From Octopus sinensis (Eukaryota), in contig NC_043017.1 of assembly GCF_006345805.1 (NCBI RefSeq), positions 23,312,001 through 23,376,000 of the forward strand: a stretch of 64,000 bases of DNA, written 5' to 3'. The translations under genes and the position numbers were made by a program. Position 1 is the stretch's first letter. Each line of letters begins with the position of its first letter. The notes under the pieces are model-generated. The model had not been told where the DNA came from. It worked only from the letters and a program-made list of their open reading frames with translations, and searched no databases. Positions 31,576-41,300 of the stretch are shown here, piece by piece.

Positions 31576-33027
31576 CACGTCTGTATATATCACACATACA
31601 CACATTTTGGTCATGTTAGTCTCTTGTGATTAGGGTTTGTTTGACTTTTTTTCCTCTTTTTTAGCTGACCCTTTTTGTTCACTTTCTTAGTCCATGACAG
31701 TACTTGTTTCCAACCTCTCATCGCAACATGTATTCTTTTCTCGCTCTTTGTGTATTTTTCTTTTCTCCTTCTTTATATTAACTTCAAACTTTTTTTAGTT
31801 TCTCAGAACAAACGTGTGACGTCCGCACGTTTTACGCTGAAGTTGTTATCCCGTTCTCGTTAACGCTATAGTCTGGTCCTTTTGTCCTCTTAATCCATTG
31901 CCTCCTATTTTGTTCGACGTATCTCTTTCTCTTTCCCTCTGTGTCCATTTCTTTTTTTCAAAAGAACAGATCAGTTCTTCACACTAGTTAGTTTACTTTC
32001 TATCTTTCCTTCTTCCTGGAATCGATAAACTAAATTACCTATTAGATATTGGATTCTGTTCATTTGGATACAACATTTTTGCCCCCCCCCAAAAAAAAAC
32101 TGGCTACTAAGCCACACATTTTAACAAGGTATTGAGTGCTTTTAACAGAGCTGACTCTATTGCAAACCCTTGAAAGCCTCTTTCTCGTCATTTGTTCTCC
32201 TAGAAACAGCAGCTAAATATCCTTAAATCACTCCTTATATGACTTTAAAAAAGGGAGGGATGGATACATGAATAACATAGTCTTAAATGCACTACTTAAA
32301 TATAGAATAGTCATGGCGAATCGCATTTTATCATTGATTAGCTCCTTCAGAGTTCTGCCGGGGCTAAACGTCTGTGACATGGCACATTACTTCTTGGTTT
32401 TCACTTCATGATACACATCACATGAAAGTTAAAAGAAATTTATTTTCAAGTTGAAAATATATAGAAAATTTTTACCTACTTCGTTTTATAAATTATATCT
32501 ATGTATTAGAAAATTGTGAATAACACTTTTTTCAAGTCGTTCCATCATTATTACGAATTTGCTCAAGTTTAAAATTTTTCTTTTAAAAACCTGAAGTAGT
32601 TTGAGAACTACTGACATAACAGTCACGTGATTTGTCGTCTGCTTCCAATTTGTTCACGACTTGATAGTGTTGAACGCTCTTTCTTCCCATCTCCCTCTCT
32701 CTATCCCTCCCTTCCTCCCCTTCCCTCTTTCTCTCTCACTCATATACATTCACGCACCACCACCACCACCATCTCGATCTTGAATGCTTTTAGCGGGGTT
32801 GACTGTTACAAAATTAAACTGTTAAAGCCAATGCGGTCGCTCGCCTTGCAAGAAATAGAAGCCAAATATCCTTCAAGTTACTTCCTACTTGTCTTTAAAA
32901 AAGAAAGGAAGTCATTTAGAGTAATTTTTGTGTTAAATACTCTCACTTTTATCAACCAACAGCTAACAATATAACGGGTTTAAGGGAAGTAAATAAGGTA
33001 GTGAATTTAATTCAATAGAAAACAAAA

Positions 33028-33257
33028 GGCGGCGAGCTGGCAGAAGCGTTAGCACGTCGGGCGAAATGCTTTGCGGTATTTCGTCTGCCATTACGTTCTG
33101 AGTTCAAATTCCGCCGAGGTCGACTTTGCCTTTCATCCTTTCGGGATCGATAAATTAAGTACCAGTTACACACTGGGGTCGATGTAATCGACTTAATACC
33201 TATGTCTGTCCTTGTTTGTCCCCTCTATGTTTAACCCCTTGTAGGTAATAAAGAAAT
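33028..33257 (+). mobile_element. SINE family B with 16-bp target-site duplication
   Basis: AATAGAAAACAAAAGG at 33014-33029 and at 33255-33270 flanks a near-consensus copy. Confidence 0.92.
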
Positions 33258-34047
33258 AGAAAACAAAAGGAATAATAATAATCCATTCTAATTGGCTTAT
33301 AAGCTACAAATGGAAAATATTCAAATTTCTGATTACTTTCGATTTATATTGTCGGAAACAAAACTTAAACTAGAAAGAATATTTTATCATGCCTTCCGAT
33401 TTCGTATTGATAATAAATAATATCAATGAGGATAATGGCATACGTTGTTCAAAGATTATGAGCAAGTTGTCAAAATAGTTAAAATGATATGAATGTCTTT
33501 TCTTGATGAAAAAAAAAATCAAAAAATGACAATTGTCATGAATACCTTCAAAATTTTATTTCTGCAAAATTTCGTAAAAATATACGCGTTATTAAGGAAG
33601 TTATCAAGAAATAAAGTCGAGAAAATAGATGCGTTGAACTGTAGTTAAGCTTTTGATTAGAAGACAAAATATTAAATGAGGAAAAACTTCCTCTGGCGGC
33701 TTAAACCAAATATTAGCTGCTAATCGATGTAGCTAAAACTGGAGCATTTAACTTAAGGATCGTTTTTTATAATTAGTTTACTCGTCCAGATTTCCCTCGG
33801 GGCTAAACAATTATGATTTATTATATTTTTTTTACTTATACAGGAACACTGGAGCATCAATTAAAATATCACCCTCCCATTTTGCTTAAAGCTAAAACTA
33901 GAGAACTGTTGCTTACCTTGTATTATATATACCATATACTTGTTTGTATATGACAAAATCATGAATAATACAGTATTCGTGACGTTTAGACGTGACTATA
34001 GATTTTCTAAAGTTTTAAATTCCGTGACACACCAATTCATCTCGCTG

Positions 34048-34457
34048 GGCGAGCTGGCAGAAACGTTAGCACGTCGGGCGAAATGCTTAGCGGTATTTCG
34101 TCTGCGTTACGTTGTGAGTTCAAATTCCGCCGAGGTCGACTTTACCTTTCATCCTTTCGGGGTCGATAAATTAAGCACCAGTTACGCACTGGGGTTGATG
34201 TAATCGACTTAATACCTATGTCTGTCCTTGTTTGTCCCCTCTGTGTTTAGCCCCTTGTGGGTAATAAAGAAATAGGTATTTCGGCTGCCGTTACGTTCTG
34301 AGTTCAAATTCCGCCGAGGTCGACTTTGCCTTTCATCCTTTTGGGGTCGATTAAACAAATACCAGTTACGCACTGAGTCGATATAATCGACTTAATCCGT
34401 TTGTCTGTCCTTGTTCGTCCTCTCTGTGTTTAGCCCCTTGTGGGTAGTAAAGAAATT
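34048..34457 (+). mobile_element. SINE family B, tandem dimer
   Basis: Head plus two bodies joined at AAAGAAATAGGTATTTCG. Confidence 0.9.
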
Positions 34458-34558
34458 GATATAATGCCGGGGTGTTCAGCAGTCTATCACGTGATAAGTC
34501 GTCTGCTCTTTCCATTTGTTCAAAGAGTGTTGAACGCTCAGTTTCTTTCTTTCTCTCC

Positions 34559-34592
<34 letters not shown>

Positions 34593-35591
34593 TATCGCTT
34601 TTAGCGAAGTTGACCCTTTTTACAACAACCATTTTGAACCCCAAATTGGTCAAGCTAATCGCTCGATCTGCTAGAAACAGCGACCGAACTCTCCCAAATC
34701 ACTCCCTGTCGGTCGTAAAAGATGGAAGAGTACATTGGATAACAGTCTTAGACACATTGCCTGAAATAAAGATTGGGTGTCCATAGTGGGATGCCTTTTA
34801 TCAATCGTCTACTGATTCAGATTTTTCTCAGGAGCAAACATCTATTACAAATACATTGCTTTTCAGTAGTTCTGATCGCGACAAGCTAGAATTCAAATAC
34901 ACTGCTTGCCTATGGGTAAGTTTAAAAAGAAATACATTTTATTTTAAAGTTAAACATTTAAAAAGCTATTACTTACCTTGTTTTATAATCATATTTGTGT
35001 ATAACAAAATCAGGAATGAAACGGTTTTCAAGATGTTTAATCTGAAGTTTGTAATTTTTCCTTAAAAATCCGCAGCGCACTAATTGAGGACCACTGACAT
35101 AACACAGTATATCACATGTGTCGTCTGCTCTTCCAGTTTGCTCATGACTTGATAGTCTTGAACGCGCTCCTCCCTCCCTCTCTCTCTCTCTTCTATCTCT
35201 CTTTCTCTTTCCTTCAACCCCTCTCGTTTTCTCTGCCTCTCTCACTCCCCCCCCTCTCTCTCTCTCACCCTCACACCACCACCTCCACCTGGCTCTTGAG
35301 TGCTTTTAGCAGGATTGACTTTGCTGCAAGGAATTTAGACCGCAAAACAAAACTTTTGAAGCCTGTCTTGTCGTCTATCTAGCTAGAAATAGCAGCCAAG
35401 TATCCCTCAAGTTACTCCCTACTTACTTACTGTTTGGTGACCAGCGAAGATTTTCCCTCCGAAGGTTATACATATATACATACATAAATGCATACGCATA
35501 TGAATGCATACACGCACGCGCGCGCACATAACATGTATACATACACACACATGTATGTGAACTTATATATGTATGTCTGAATGAATGTATG

Positions 35592-39566: not shown

Positions 39567-39782
39567 GTCGTGTGTGTGTTTGTGTGTCTGTGTTGTCCCC
39601 CTAGCATTGCTTGACAACCGATGCTGGTGTGTTTATGTCCCCGTTACTTAGCGGTTCGGCAAAAGAGACCGATAGAATAAGTACTGGGCTTACAAAAGAA
39701 TAAGTCCCGGGGGTCGATTTGCTCGATTAAAGGCGGTGCTCCAGCATGGCCGCAGTCAAATGACTGAAACGAGTAAAAGAAA
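39349..39782 (+). mobile_element. SINE family A, full length
   Basis: Starts GGCGCAGGAGTGGCTGTGTGGTAAG and ends TGACTGAAACGAGTAAAAGA. Confidence 0.92.
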
Positions 39783-39851
39783 TAGATAAATAAAAGAATG
39801 TTTCTGAATGACAAAGTGAAAATAGAGTTTTGAATATGGGTATCGTCTTGT

Positions 39852-40088
39852 CTAGTGGCCCCCAACCTTTTTGCTCCACGGCCCGGTTTAATGCAAGACA
39901 ATTTTTCCACAGACCGGGGATCTCATAACAAAACACAATAAAATGCATGATATATAATCTAGTTATTACATATACATTACACATATAGTACGTATATAAT
40001 GCATAAACACTCTGTAGACTGCGGTAGCCAATAAAATAGAAATAAAATTTTAAAGTCTGCTGTGAGCCCGGCGGTTAAGGACCTTCTC
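39852..40088. mobile_element. Probable hAT-type MITE
   Basis: Begins CTAGTGGCCCCCAACCTTTTTGCTCCACGGCCCGG and ends GCCCGGCGGTTAAGGACC, like CAGGGGTCCCCAACC-type hAT ends; TSD not clear. Confidence 0.5.
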
Positions 40089-40115
40089 GCCTGGTCATAT
40101 ATCCATGGTCCATAA

Positions 40116-40713
40116 GGCGGCGAGCTGGCAGAAACGTTAGCGCGCCGGGCGAAATGCTTAGCAGTATTTCGTCTGTCATTACGTTCTGAGTTCAAATTCC
40201 GCCGAGGTGGACTTTGCCTTTCATCCTTTCGGGGTCGATAAATTAAGTACCAGTTACGCACTGGGGTCGATGTAATCGACTTAATACCTATGTCTGTCCT
40301 TGTTTGTCCCCTCTGTGATTAACCCCTTGTGAGTAGTAAAGAAATAGGTATTTCGTCTGTCGCTACGTTCTGAGTTCAAATTCCGCCGAGGTCGACTTTG
40401 CCTTTCATCCTTTCGGGTTTGATTAAATAAGTACCAGTTACGTACTGGGGTCGATATAATCGACTTAATCCGTTTGTCTGTCCTTGTTTGTCCCCTCTGT
40501 GTTTAGCTCCTTGTGGGTAGTAAAGAAATAGGTATTTCGTCTGTCGTTACGTTCTGAGTTCAAATTCTGCCGAGGTCGATTTTGCCTTTCGTCCTTTCGG
40601 GGTCGATAAATAAAGTACCAGTTTCGCACTGGGGTCGATATAATCGACTTAATCCGTTTGTCTGTCCTTGTTTGTCCCCTCTGTGTTTAGCCCCTTGTGG
40701 GCAATAAAGAAAT
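40116..40713 (+). mobile_element. SINE family B, tandem trimer (184-bp period)
   Basis: One head, then three bodies starting at 40163, 40347 and 40531. Confidence 0.92.
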
Positions 40714-41109
40714 ATATATATGCACTGTCCGAATATGGTCGTGATTGAATACCCTGCATCATACGTCTGTTTTTGTTTTTTCTTCAATTTTCGCGGGAGT
40801 GAAACATCCGCCGCATAAAACATTGTTTGTCAATGGTTTTGATTTCGAAGTATACTGAACGTATCGCTCATCAAGTTTAAAACAATGTTATTTTGGAGTT
40901 TAAAAATATAGAGAAGAAAAGAAAAAAAAAACAGTTACTTACCTTACTTTATAAATCGTATTTATAGATAAGAAAATCGTGAATAATACTTTCTAAGTCT
41001 TTCAAAAATTCGCGGCACACCACTTTCACATCCACCGACATGACACGGTGTCACGTGATATGTCGTCTGTTTCTTCCAATTTGTTCGCGACTTGATATAG
41101 TGTTGAAAG

Positions 41110-41300
41110 TTCTCCTCTCTCCCCCTCTCTCTCTCATTCATTCTTTGTTTCTCTCTCCCCCTCTCTCTCTCATTCATTCTTTGTTTCTCTCTCCTCTCTC
41201 TCTCTCTCCCCCTCTCTCTCTCATTCATTCTTTATTTCTCTCTCTTCTCCTCTCTCTCATTCATTCTTTGTTTCTCTCTCTCTCTTTCCTCAGTAACACT
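41110..41300. repeat. CT-rich minisatellite (CTCTCTCATTCATTCTTTGTTTCT) x4
   Basis: Direct inspection. Confidence 0.85.

Follow-up and report, generated by a model that had tools for sequence, protein, structure and literature searches.

An intron of the SINHCAF gene of Octopus sinensis contains six head-to-tail tandem units that share a short E-box core, and we somewhat favour the view that a promoter-like cis-regulatory module was duplicated locally in tandem long ago. It is from conservation that we infer a function for the array. A preliminary description of this DNA had proposed either an array of antisense promoters and first exons or a replicated enhancer battery for SINHCAF; the latter fits our data, as the core appears to be under purifying selection and its left half is kept in Argonauta, whereas the antisense exons are not borne out.

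Results

The window analysed is a 64-kb stretch of O. sinensis (CM016879.1:23312001-23376000), and it was compared with the 82-kb locus of O. vulgaris, with O. bimaculoides and with the SINHCAF region of Argonauta hians. The array occupies part of the 35.6-kb SINHCAF intron that precedes the ATG exon, and is oriented like the gene (+ strand). The ATG exon was located by tblastn of P0317 (Pfam FAM60A, E 3.5e-32), and the N-terminal residues of isoform P0400 of O. vulgaris (285 aa) led to a non-coding exon upstream. The intron runs from the end of that exon (8046) to the ATG exon (43701), which is preceded by the acceptor tttttcag. It had been called the first intron, but this is true of one isoform only, because O. 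vulgaris has an isoform with an extra exon 21 kb farther upstream.

~7705 and ~7735: CCAAT boxes near the upstream SINHCAF exon
7895..8046, + strand: upstream non-coding SINHCAF exon (5' limit provisional), donor ATAG/GTAAGT
43701..43947, + strand: ATG-bearing SINHCAF exon, ATG at 43729
~49523-49642, ~51795-51923, ~53028-53249, + strand: other SINHCAF coding exons

Both BLAST and nhmmer recovered exactly six copies in the window, all on the + strand and within 32.3-41.2 kb, in agreement with the positions described before; these searches found no further copy in the remainder of the window, in the 82-kb locus of O. vulgaris or in the about 190 kb of cephalopod sequence examined. The units span 32.2-42.0 kb and form two alternating subfamilies (A and B). 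The copies had been described as those of a ~70-bp core; the core is real, but homology runs over the whole unit, U1, U3 and U5 aligning over ~580-650 bp with 63-66% identity. This homology is continuous across the unit borders, the units abut in phase, and neither transposable element (TE) termini nor target-site duplications were found in them. The base unit measures 639-710 bp (~0.65 kb), whereas insertions (SINEs, microsatellites and others) have lengthened U2, U4, U5 and U6; these SINEs are missing from O. bimaculoides, where the core-to-core spacings are about 1158, 600, 665 and 1778 bp.

32210..32848, + strand: U1, subfamily A, 639 bp, uninterrupted; conserved part 32318-32698 (unit alignments, nhmmer)
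32849..34670, + strand: U2, subfamily B; SINEs ~33019-33260 and ~34048-34462, both missing from O. bimaculoides; conserved parts 33757-34043 and 34453-34567
34671..35380, + strand: U3, subfamily A, 710 bp, uninterrupted; E-box now CACATG
35381..37156, + strand: U4, subfamily B, decayed core; SINEs 35592-36011 and 36671-37095
37157..39049, + strand: U5, subfamily A; ~0.85-kb (TG/TA)n tract 37196-38046 and a 0.3-kb CT/CA tract
39050..41965 (3' limit approximate), + strand: U6, subfamily A; conserved part 40747-41133; SINE 39348-39792, triple SINE 40111-40716 and other inserted DNA

The core (~45-60 bp) has the layout GTCACGTGAY..GTCGTCTGC..CCAATTTG..GACTTGAT. It contains a T-flanked palindromic E-box, the invariant GTCGTCTGC 4-6 bp downstream, then CTTCCAATTTG (CCAAT/ETS-like) and GACTTGATA, and after it comes a (CT)n tract. 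CACGTG occurs at 32624, 34488, 38417 and 41052, and on the + strand N(3-8)-TCGTCTG comes next each time, a combination with 4 matches in the window vs 0 in 100 shuffles; U3 has CACATG instead (35113), and U4 only a partial core (36459-36498). As previously proposed, conservation drops on either side of the core, whose mean pairwise column identity is 0.82-0.85 vs 0.57 overall (0.75-0.78 for the "donor" block and for the ATCATGAATAATAC block). In U1, U5 and U6 the cores are 89-95% identical vs 59-64% for the non-core parts.

32622..32680, + strand: core U1, GTCACGTGAT..GTCGTCTGCTTCCAATTTGTTCACGACTTGATAGTGTTGAACGCTCT; 1 substitution in 59 bp vs O. bimaculoides
34486..34539, + strand: core U2, palindromic E-box ATCACGTGAT
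35111..35168, + strand: core U3, CACATG; 13 bp inside it deleted in O. bimaculoides
36459..36498, + strand: core U4, decayed, TTGAGTGATGTATCGTCTGC..., without E-box, right half replaced by (CA)n
38415..38475, + strand: core U5, perfect palindrome GTCACGTGAC
41050..41113, + strand: core U6, the copy closest to the ATG exon, 2.6 kb upstream
32681..32745, + strand: CT-rich tract after core U1; equivalents at ~34544-34593, 35169-35275, 36497-36600, 38480-38782 and 41111-41420

The units are 1:1 orthologous in O. vulgaris and O. bimaculoides, except that the U4 region is missing in the latter (35424-38155 of the window has no counterpart); copy number is 6 vs 5 between species. Orthologous units are 90-94% identical and paralogous units 56-72%; there has therefore been no concerted evolution and no recent conversion. 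Between O. sinensis and O. bimaculoides, the 44-bp core carries 3 substitutions in 205 positions (1.5%) vs 8.5% elsewhere in the unit (Fisher p = 6e-5) and 6.6% intron-wide (binomial p 5e-4); divergence among 318 sliding windows is lowest in the core, and 0/253 non-overlapping windows are as low. Many other intron blocks of 40-180 bp are also nearly invariant in this comparison, in which divergence is only 6.6%. These rates point to purifying selection on the E-box core between Octopus species, although a locally low mutation rate, or old gene conversion restricted to the cores, may be the alternative. Individual units are dispensable to a degree, as the U4 core is decayed, its region has been lost in O. 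bimaculoides, and this species has deletions inside the U3 core (13 bp) and on the right flank of those of U5 and U6.

In Argonauta hians, two + strand matches to CACGTG-N(3-8)-TCGTCTG lie 4.15 and 1.85 kb upstream of the SINHCAF ATG (0 expected), and both are recovered, with E 7e-4 and 3e-3, by a profile built from the O. sinensis units alone. The core is recognisable there in its left half only, and a CT-rich tract follows each of the two copies; no other unique sequence of the Argonauta SINHCAF-upstream region aligns to the Octopus intron. The proximal core directly adjoins CRE (TGACGTCA) and GCCAT motifs, and in the distal one TGACGTCA lies about 11 bp downstream. This survival suggests that selection on the core predates the Octopus/Argonauta split. 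The array is also CpG-undepleted (o/e 0.6-1.0). In O. sinensis and O. bimaculoides depletion to about 0.2 starts just past the last unit, and in Argonauta it sets in no more than about 1 kb from the last core.

On the minus strand, the GT sites at 32479, 33916, 34976, 36358 and 40942 are as earlier described, and the U5 donor is decayed.

32474..32482, - strand: donor-like 9-mer of U1, GAA/GTAGGT
33911-33919, 34971-34979, 36353-36361, 40937-40945, - strand: other donor-like 9-mers

Discussion

These minus-strand sites had suggested that transcripts start near the cores and carry first exons of ~90-130 nt spliced to shared exons of a lncRNA or nested gene. Near-consensus donors (AAG/GTAAGY) in 5/6 units, a promoter-like core content (E-box, CCAAT), identical U3 and U6 donors in all three Octopus species and the second-best conservation of the donor block among paralogues (0.75 vs 0.57 overall) agree with this. 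However, the excess conservation over spacers that had been expected of core and donor alike holds between species for the core only: donor 9-mers diverge at or above background both between O. sinensis and O. bimaculoides (6/45 = 13% vs 6.6% intron-wide) and relative to O. vulgaris (6/54), the U1 donor differs in all three species (GT lost in O. bimaculoides, site rewritten in O. vulgaris) and U5 has a donor in O. bimaculoides only. The would-be exon is likewise unconstrained (7.3% vs 6.6%), TCAGT occurs in U1 and U3 only and is altered in O. bimaculoides U3, and nothing upstream of the left half of the core is conserved in Argonauta. The O. vulgaris annotation calls no protein-coding gene inside the intron and none on the minus strand, and in an exact look-up the minus-strand ORF running through U3 matched no assembled contig, which is weak evidence. 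We regard such antisense transcription as improbable. Transcription in the sense direction, with the units as copies of an ancestral SINHCAF promoter/5' region of which at least one, U6 above all, still starts + strand transcripts, is unlikely too. It would explain why all units share the direction of the gene, why E-box and CCAAT are combined in the core, why CpG depletion, a proxy of gene-body methylation, begins downstream of U6 and not at the upstream exon 35 kb away, with a similar boundary in O. bimaculoides and Argonauta, and why both Argonauta cores lie beside or near a CRE. But CpG o/e reflects methylation indirectly, the sequence downstream of the cores yielded no conserved + strand splice donor, the sole exon annotated as joined to the ATG exon from upstream is the one at about 8.0 kb, and the SINHCAF 5'UTR of another cephalopod, core-like by eye, gave no nhmmer match.

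A short conserved element repeated in tandem within an intron is also the typical layout of miRNA or snoRNA clusters, in which the core would be the mature product. We consider a small RNA array of this kind, or a spliced-leader-like one, most improbable: no core matched Rfam (all hits were sub-threshold and in microsatellites), MFE z-scores ranged from +1 to -2.9 with no consistent hairpin, the alifold consensus of the cores has 4 pairs, an energy of -0.75 kcal/mol and no compensatory change, the array lacks C/D or H/ACA boxes in register, and spliced-leader genes fit poorly with a start-to-donor distance of 90-130 nt and a paralogue divergence of 25-40%. No Pfam domain was found in ORFs overlapping the array. 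Finally, the array could be a functionless old tandem repeat or repeat-family fragment, whose core seems conserved through mutation-rate heterogeneity, protection of unmethylated CpG or old gene conversion. Six SINE insertions, kilobase microsatellites, the loss of U4 and the core deletions of O. bimaculoides have all been tolerated, and the many equally invariant intron blocks agree with this explanation. We find it rather unlikely, as no other window of the unit is as little diverged as the core, Argonauta keeps the core motif twice in a region without any other alignable unique sequence, orthologues resemble each other more than paralogues do, and the units are in phase, devoid of TE hallmarks and confined to this locus in the sequence searched.

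A duplicated cis-regulatory module can be compared with several known systems. Homotypic clusters of transcription factor sites and shadow or duplicated intronic enhancers likewise have several copies of one short module near one gene, conservation restricted to the binding-site core and single copies that can be lost (here U4 and the O. bimaculoides deletions) while the set persists; unlike them, the putative regulatory array arose by duplication of whole ~0.65-kb units that are still recognisably paralogous despite their age. Variable-first-exon clusters (clustered protocadherins, UGT1A) share the tandem same-orientation units with a promoter-like element and a GT donor-like site, but their first exons are long and coding, with conserved donors spliced to constant exons, whereas the array has no ORF, donors that drift between species and no known constant minus-strand exons. 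The promoter and enhancer repeats of rDNA intergenic spacers (Xenopus, Drosophila) are a functional analogy, being tandem promoter-like duplicates upstream of a transcription unit, in its orientation, as the array units are, and these would also act jointly; they belong to another polymerase system, have other sequences and are homogenised by concerted evolution, whereas the array units diverged independently. Macrosatellites and ordinary intronic tandem repeats are similar in their head-to-tail arrangement, a period of hundreds of bp and a copy number that varies by species, but the array units are 28-44% diverged, 1:1 orthologous and not homogenised, with one short constrained segment.

We take the E-box to be a putative target of the USF or MiT/TFE type (T-flanked CACGTG; CLEAR-type palindrome GTCACGTGAC). 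Like those sites, U1, U2, U5, U6 and both Argonauta copies have TCACGTGA with a 5' T flank, and the CLEAR-type palindrome is exact in U5 and in Argonauta copy B; the invariant neighbour GTCGTCTGC is foreign to these motifs, and CLEAR sites usually occur singly, in promoters of lysosomal genes, rather than as intronic arrays. The core is probably bound by a bHLH-ZIP factor, and each core that is intact (U1, U5 and U6 for certain, U2 and U3 in part) would bind a USF or MiT/TFE-type dimer, with a partner factor occupying GTCGTCTGC beside it. As redundant enhancers, or as alternative promoters that produce transcripts, the copies would jointly form a homotypic cluster, which may set SINHCAF expression, presumably its target, from germline-unmethylated chromatin.

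Organization of the array

The array studied here lies among the exons of the gene for SINHCAF (FAM60A), which belongs to the SIN3-HDAC repressor complex as one of its subunits. These exons were placed in the window as follows.

SINHCAF exons in the window
Ends at 8046, + strand: upstream exon, donor ATAG/GTAAGT, placed via the N-terminus of the 285-aa O. vulgaris isoform
43701-43947, + strand: ATG exon, acceptor tttttcag, ATG at 43729, Pfam FAM60A (E 3.5e-32)
About 49.5, 51.8 and 53.0-53.2 kb, + strand: three further coding exons

The array had been assigned to the first intron of the gene. 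It does lie in a 35.6-kb intron directly 5' of the ATG exon, but calling this intron the first one depends on the isoform, because in O. vulgaris one more exon is annotated 21 kb upstream. It is in this exon that the reading frame of the 285-aa isoform opens (O. vulgaris locus, 10001-10102; the counterpart of window positions ~7960-8046 is at 31276-31359). The O. sinensis copy of the exon at ~7960-8046 is probably non-coding because it contains in-frame stops, and CCAAT boxes are found directly 5' of it. SINHCAF, on the + strand, is the only gene called in the O. vulgaris locus. About 300 bp past the donor of the ATG exon starts a (TA)n-type microsatellite of 3.3 kb (44260-47534, GC 15-18%).

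All the coordinates in the preliminary description proved correct, and its count of at least six copies can now be made exact: BLAST and profile searches found six units (U1-U6), all on the + strand at 32.3-41.2 kb, and none elsewhere in the window. No extra degenerate units were detected near the array (nhmmer --max, E <= 10); in the adjacent segments 'U0' (31.6-32.2 kb) and 'U7' (42.0-43.7 kb), any similarity to the units is limited to their tail blocks. Homology extends beyond the ~70-bp core originally described to whole units of ~640-710 bp; identity among U1, U3 and U5 is 63-66% over ~580-650 bp. The units adjoin head to tail in a single phase, which identifies the array as a product of tandem duplication and not of separate insertions. 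They fall into two alternating subfamilies, A (U1, U3, U5 and U6) and B (U2 and U4, 72-76% identical to each other), a pattern suggestive of the duplication of a two-unit block. The units are broken up by six SINE copies and by several long microsatellites.

Alignment of the six units bore out the view that the core is better conserved than its surroundings (0.82-0.85 in the core, 0.57 overall), with intermediate values of 0.75-0.78 in the donor-like block and in the ATCATGAATAATAC block. This is clearest for U1, U5 and U6, whose cores are 89-95% identical while their flanks reach just 59-64%.

Several other features were observed around the array. At 22370-22620, 10 kb upstream, GAGTCGTGTAATCCGTCTGTATTTG and a long CT tract after it resemble a very decayed core with its tract, which the profile search did not detect; further + strand CT tracts occur at ~9335, 11459, 14262 and 23051. 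A young tandem repeat at 26868-27420 (135-bp period, 4.1 copies, 98% identity) has a CpG observed/expected ratio (o/e) of ~1.4-2.2, unusually high for its AT-rich surroundings.

Conservation in Octopus and selection on the core

Comparison loci were reached via the SINHCAF protein and comprised 10 kb upstream of the ATG in both O. bimaculoides and Argonauta hians, and the whole gene (82 kb) in O. vulgaris. The same six units are present in O. vulgaris, and five of them (U1, U2, U3, U5 and U6) are found at colinear positions in O. bimaculoides. Orthologous units are 90-94% identical and paralogous ones 56-72%; the array is therefore older than the split of these species and has evolved without homogenisation. 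All six SINEs of the array are missing from O. bimaculoides and are confined to the lineage of O. sinensis and O. vulgaris. The segment 35424-38155, which holds U4, has no O. bimaculoides counterpart (compared with positions 5391-5473 of that locus), and given how far U4 has diverged, it cannot be young and must have been deleted in O. bimaculoides. Just upstream of U1, O. sinensis and O. bimaculoides share an almost unchanged block of 182 bp (31655-31836) that ends in a CRE-like AACGTGTGACGTCC; no longer block of this kind occurs in the region.

Between these two species the 44-bp core has accumulated 3 substitutions in 205 sites (1.5%), compared with 8.5% in the rest of the unit (Fisher p = 6e-5) and 6.6% in the aligned whole intron (binomial p = 5e-4). 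When the unit alignment was scanned in windows of 47 columns, the core was the least diverged of all 318, and none of 253 non-overlapping windows has a divergence as low. As the core was delimited from paralogue conservation, this test on orthologues is independent of its definition. The core thus shows the slower substitution relative to nearby non-coding DNA that is expected of a cis element. Against strict constraint, the U3 core of O. bimaculoides carries an internal 13-bp deletion, the U5 and U6 cores of the same species have right-flank deletions, and numerous other intron blocks of 40-180 bp have hardly changed over so short an evolutionary distance. Four of the six units and both Argonauta copies contain a palindromic T-flanked E-box, and U1, U5 and U6 contain CCAAT; the assignment of these motifs to transcription factors is putative.

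The core in Argonauta and other cephalopods

The arrangement CACGTG-N(3-8)-TCGTCTG occurs twice in Argonauta, at 4.15 and 1.85 kb before the SINHCAF ATG and both times on the + strand, with none expected in shuffled sequences. A profile built from the six O. sinensis units alone recovers both sites (E 7e-4 and 3e-3). Each core is followed by a CT-rich tract. A CRE-like TGACGTCA is found directly next to the proximal core and ~11 bp downstream of the distal core. What Argonauta retains is GTCACGTG..TGTCGTCTGC, the core's left half; the half with CCAAT/GACTTGAT is unrecognisable. The rest of the Argonauta region gave no other alignment to the Octopus intron except SINE fragments, microsatellites and coding exons.

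These SINE fragments (A. hians locus, 1392-1456, 5283-5349, 9174-9292 and 9514-9689) match the window's tRNA-like SINE (e.g. 40111-40716) at 70-80% identity, so this family or a relative of it is common to incirrate octopods. Between both Argonauta cores, positions 6001-8000 are GC-rich (49-59%) and CpG-rich, inflating the CpG island there; this segment resembles an inserted coding element, possibly a transposable element (TE).

SINHCAF transcripts of another cephalopod (Logan SRR29271455-82; protein 77% identical to that of Octopus) start with ACGCGTGTGTGTCGTATG and then a CT-rich stretch. We considered these first ~60 nt as a core in sense orientation at the start of the 5'UTR, but the likeness was by eye and nhmmer gave no significant match with either profile, so the idea was abandoned.

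CpG domains

CpG o/e was computed across the window with interspersed repeats masked. It is 0.6-0.97 over 6-41.5 kb, a stretch that includes the SINHCAF promoter and the whole 5' intron, drops right after U6 to 0.36 at 41.5-43.7 kb and is 0.14-0.33 over 44-64 kb; at 1-4 kb it is 0.19-0.34. Similar boundaries were seen in the other two loci examined. Within the O. bimaculoides locus (1-24927), the undepleted stretch coincides with the array. The Argonauta locus (1-22418) has a 6-kb undepleted island, partly made of the GC-rich insert, which contains both cores and ends ~1 kb past the proximal one. CpG depletion in invertebrates is an established record of germline methylation. By this indirect proxy, the array would lie in historically unmethylated DNA and its 3' end would mark the start of the methylated gene body, a pattern more in keeping with a regulatory region or promoter than with inert intronic DNA.

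Splice donors and transcript-based readings

The preliminary description had read each unit on the minus strand as an antisense promoter and first exon ending in a 5' splice site. The donor-like sites of the three species are listed below.

Donor-like sites of the units (minus strand)
U1: O. sinensis GAA/GTAGGT; O. vulgaris GTG/GTAAAT; O. bimaculoides GAG/ATAAGT (GT lost)
U2: O. sinensis AAG/GTAAGC; O. vulgaris AAG/GTTAGC; O. bimaculoides AAG/GTAAGC
U3: AAG/GTAAGT in O. sinensis, O. vulgaris and O. bimaculoides
U4: O. sinensis AAG/GTAAGC; O. vulgaris AAA/GTAAGC; O. bimaculoides, unit absent
U5: O. sinensis none; O. vulgaris none; O. bimaculoides AAG/GTAAAT
U6: AAG/GTAAGT in O. sinensis, O. vulgaris and O. 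bimaculoides

When the 9-mers were pooled, 6 of 45 sites differed between O. sinensis and O. bimaculoides (13%, background 6.6-8.5%); for O. sinensis against O. vulgaris the count was 6 of 54 (11%, background 1.9%). The segment from donor to core has an ordinary divergence (7.3%), and the initiator-like TCAGT is confined to U1 and U3 and altered in the U3 of O. bimaculoides. Excess conservation had been predicted for core and donors alike; between species it was found in the core, which evolves more slowly than the rest of the unit, but not in the donors, which diverge at or above background and differ between species in U1 and U5. The donors look like a drifting inheritance from the ancestral unit and not like selected sites. 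A variable-first-exon cluster of the protocadherin or UGT1A type has a selected donor for each first exon, a feature that U1-U6 do not show. In such clusters a conserved promoter element also precedes every variable exon, and the conserved E-box/CCAAT core is a candidate for one, in either direction; the transcripts run on into constant exons shared on the same strand, whereas the one gene called in the O. vulgaris locus is SINHCAF on the + strand. We consider an antisense first-exon array quite improbable.

Readings in which the units are RNA genes found even less support. An Rfam scan of 30.0-44.5 kb (E <= 1) gave sub-threshold microsatellite matches only, none of them on a core, and ARAGORN found no tRNA. 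Folding of the cores and whole units on both strands revealed no consistent hairpin (z-scores +1 to -2.9), and alifold on nine cores gave -0.75 kcal/mol with no compensatory pairs. Given this lack of structure, miRNA, snoRNA and spliced-leader ideas were dropped, and a structured non-coding RNA gene was rejected for having neither a covariance-model match on the cores nor a conserved stable structure with compensatory changes. In a spliced-leader RNA gene, an RNA of ~100 nt carries a short, near-identical leader exon of 16-50 nt together with a donor and an Sm site; the units have a core-donor distance of 90-130 nt, copies 25-40% diverged, drifting donors and no Sm-like site in register. That U1-U6 are RNA genes of any of these kinds is thus extremely improbable.

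Coding potential was also considered. ORFs across the cores contain no Pfam domain, and exact look-ups of the ORFs at 43681-44151, 43729-44151, 41040-41369, 30103-30405(-) and 34973-35245(-) returned no record. The fourth of these, of 100 aa, had been guessed to be mariner-like; it has no Pfam domain and we make no such claim.

Discussion

In the best-supported account of U1-U6, in which we place slightly better than even confidence, a promoter-like regulatory module was duplicated in tandem long ago and selection has kept its E-box core; the copies would act jointly on SINHCAF. The E-box core would probably be bound by a bHLH-ZIP factor of the USF or TFE type, with a partner on GTCGTCTGC.

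This account has to be weighed against a functionless old repeat. The deletions in the O. bimaculoides cores and the many other nearly invariant blocks of the intron are compatible with such a repeat, and the slow substitution of the core argues against it. An ordinary TE-derived repeat had been expected to show dispersed copies with TE termini. The units adjoin in one phase and orientation, with homology crossing their borders, and lack termini, target-site duplications and independent insertions; the SINEs within them, unlike the units, do behave as independent insertions. No copies were found outside the arrays in ~190 kb of cephalopod DNA (the 64-kb window and the 82-kb O. vulgaris, 25-kb O. 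bimaculoides and 22-kb Argonauta loci), and a 25-nt core pattern had no matches in a metagenome scan, which is uninformative. We regard a functionless repeat as unlikely; were the element inactive, the array would be merely a well-dated old tandem repeat. Sense-strand alternative promoters, for which the undepleted CpG domain would be a suitable setting, seem a little less likely still. It is conceivable, if doubtful, that the units are alternative promoters of either orientation kept since before the Octopus/Argonauta split, producing antisense transcripts whose first exons are variable and non-coding, or a series of sense SINHCAF start sites with U6 setting the gene-body methylation boundary. 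If this were true, the variable-first-exon architecture would have a non-coding counterpart here, in a chromatin-regulator gene of an invertebrate.

Returning to the duplicated regulatory module, elements of this kind, namely duplicated conserved cis-regulatory modules, are known, and this instance is undescribed in the literature searched, where we found nothing on this locus or on the core motif in cephalopods. To the best of our knowledge, almost nothing is known about the cis regulation of cephalopod genes. The array offers a sharply delimited, tractable candidate element, with a core of ~45 bp, six natural variants that span all states between intact and decayed, and orthologues in at least four octopod genomes, and it illustrates the tandem multiplication of a regulatory module followed by selection on the binding-site core alone. 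Furthermore, the coincidence of the array end with the CpG-depletion boundary, if confirmed, would mean that in a mollusc a methylation boundary can be linked to a defined sequence element.
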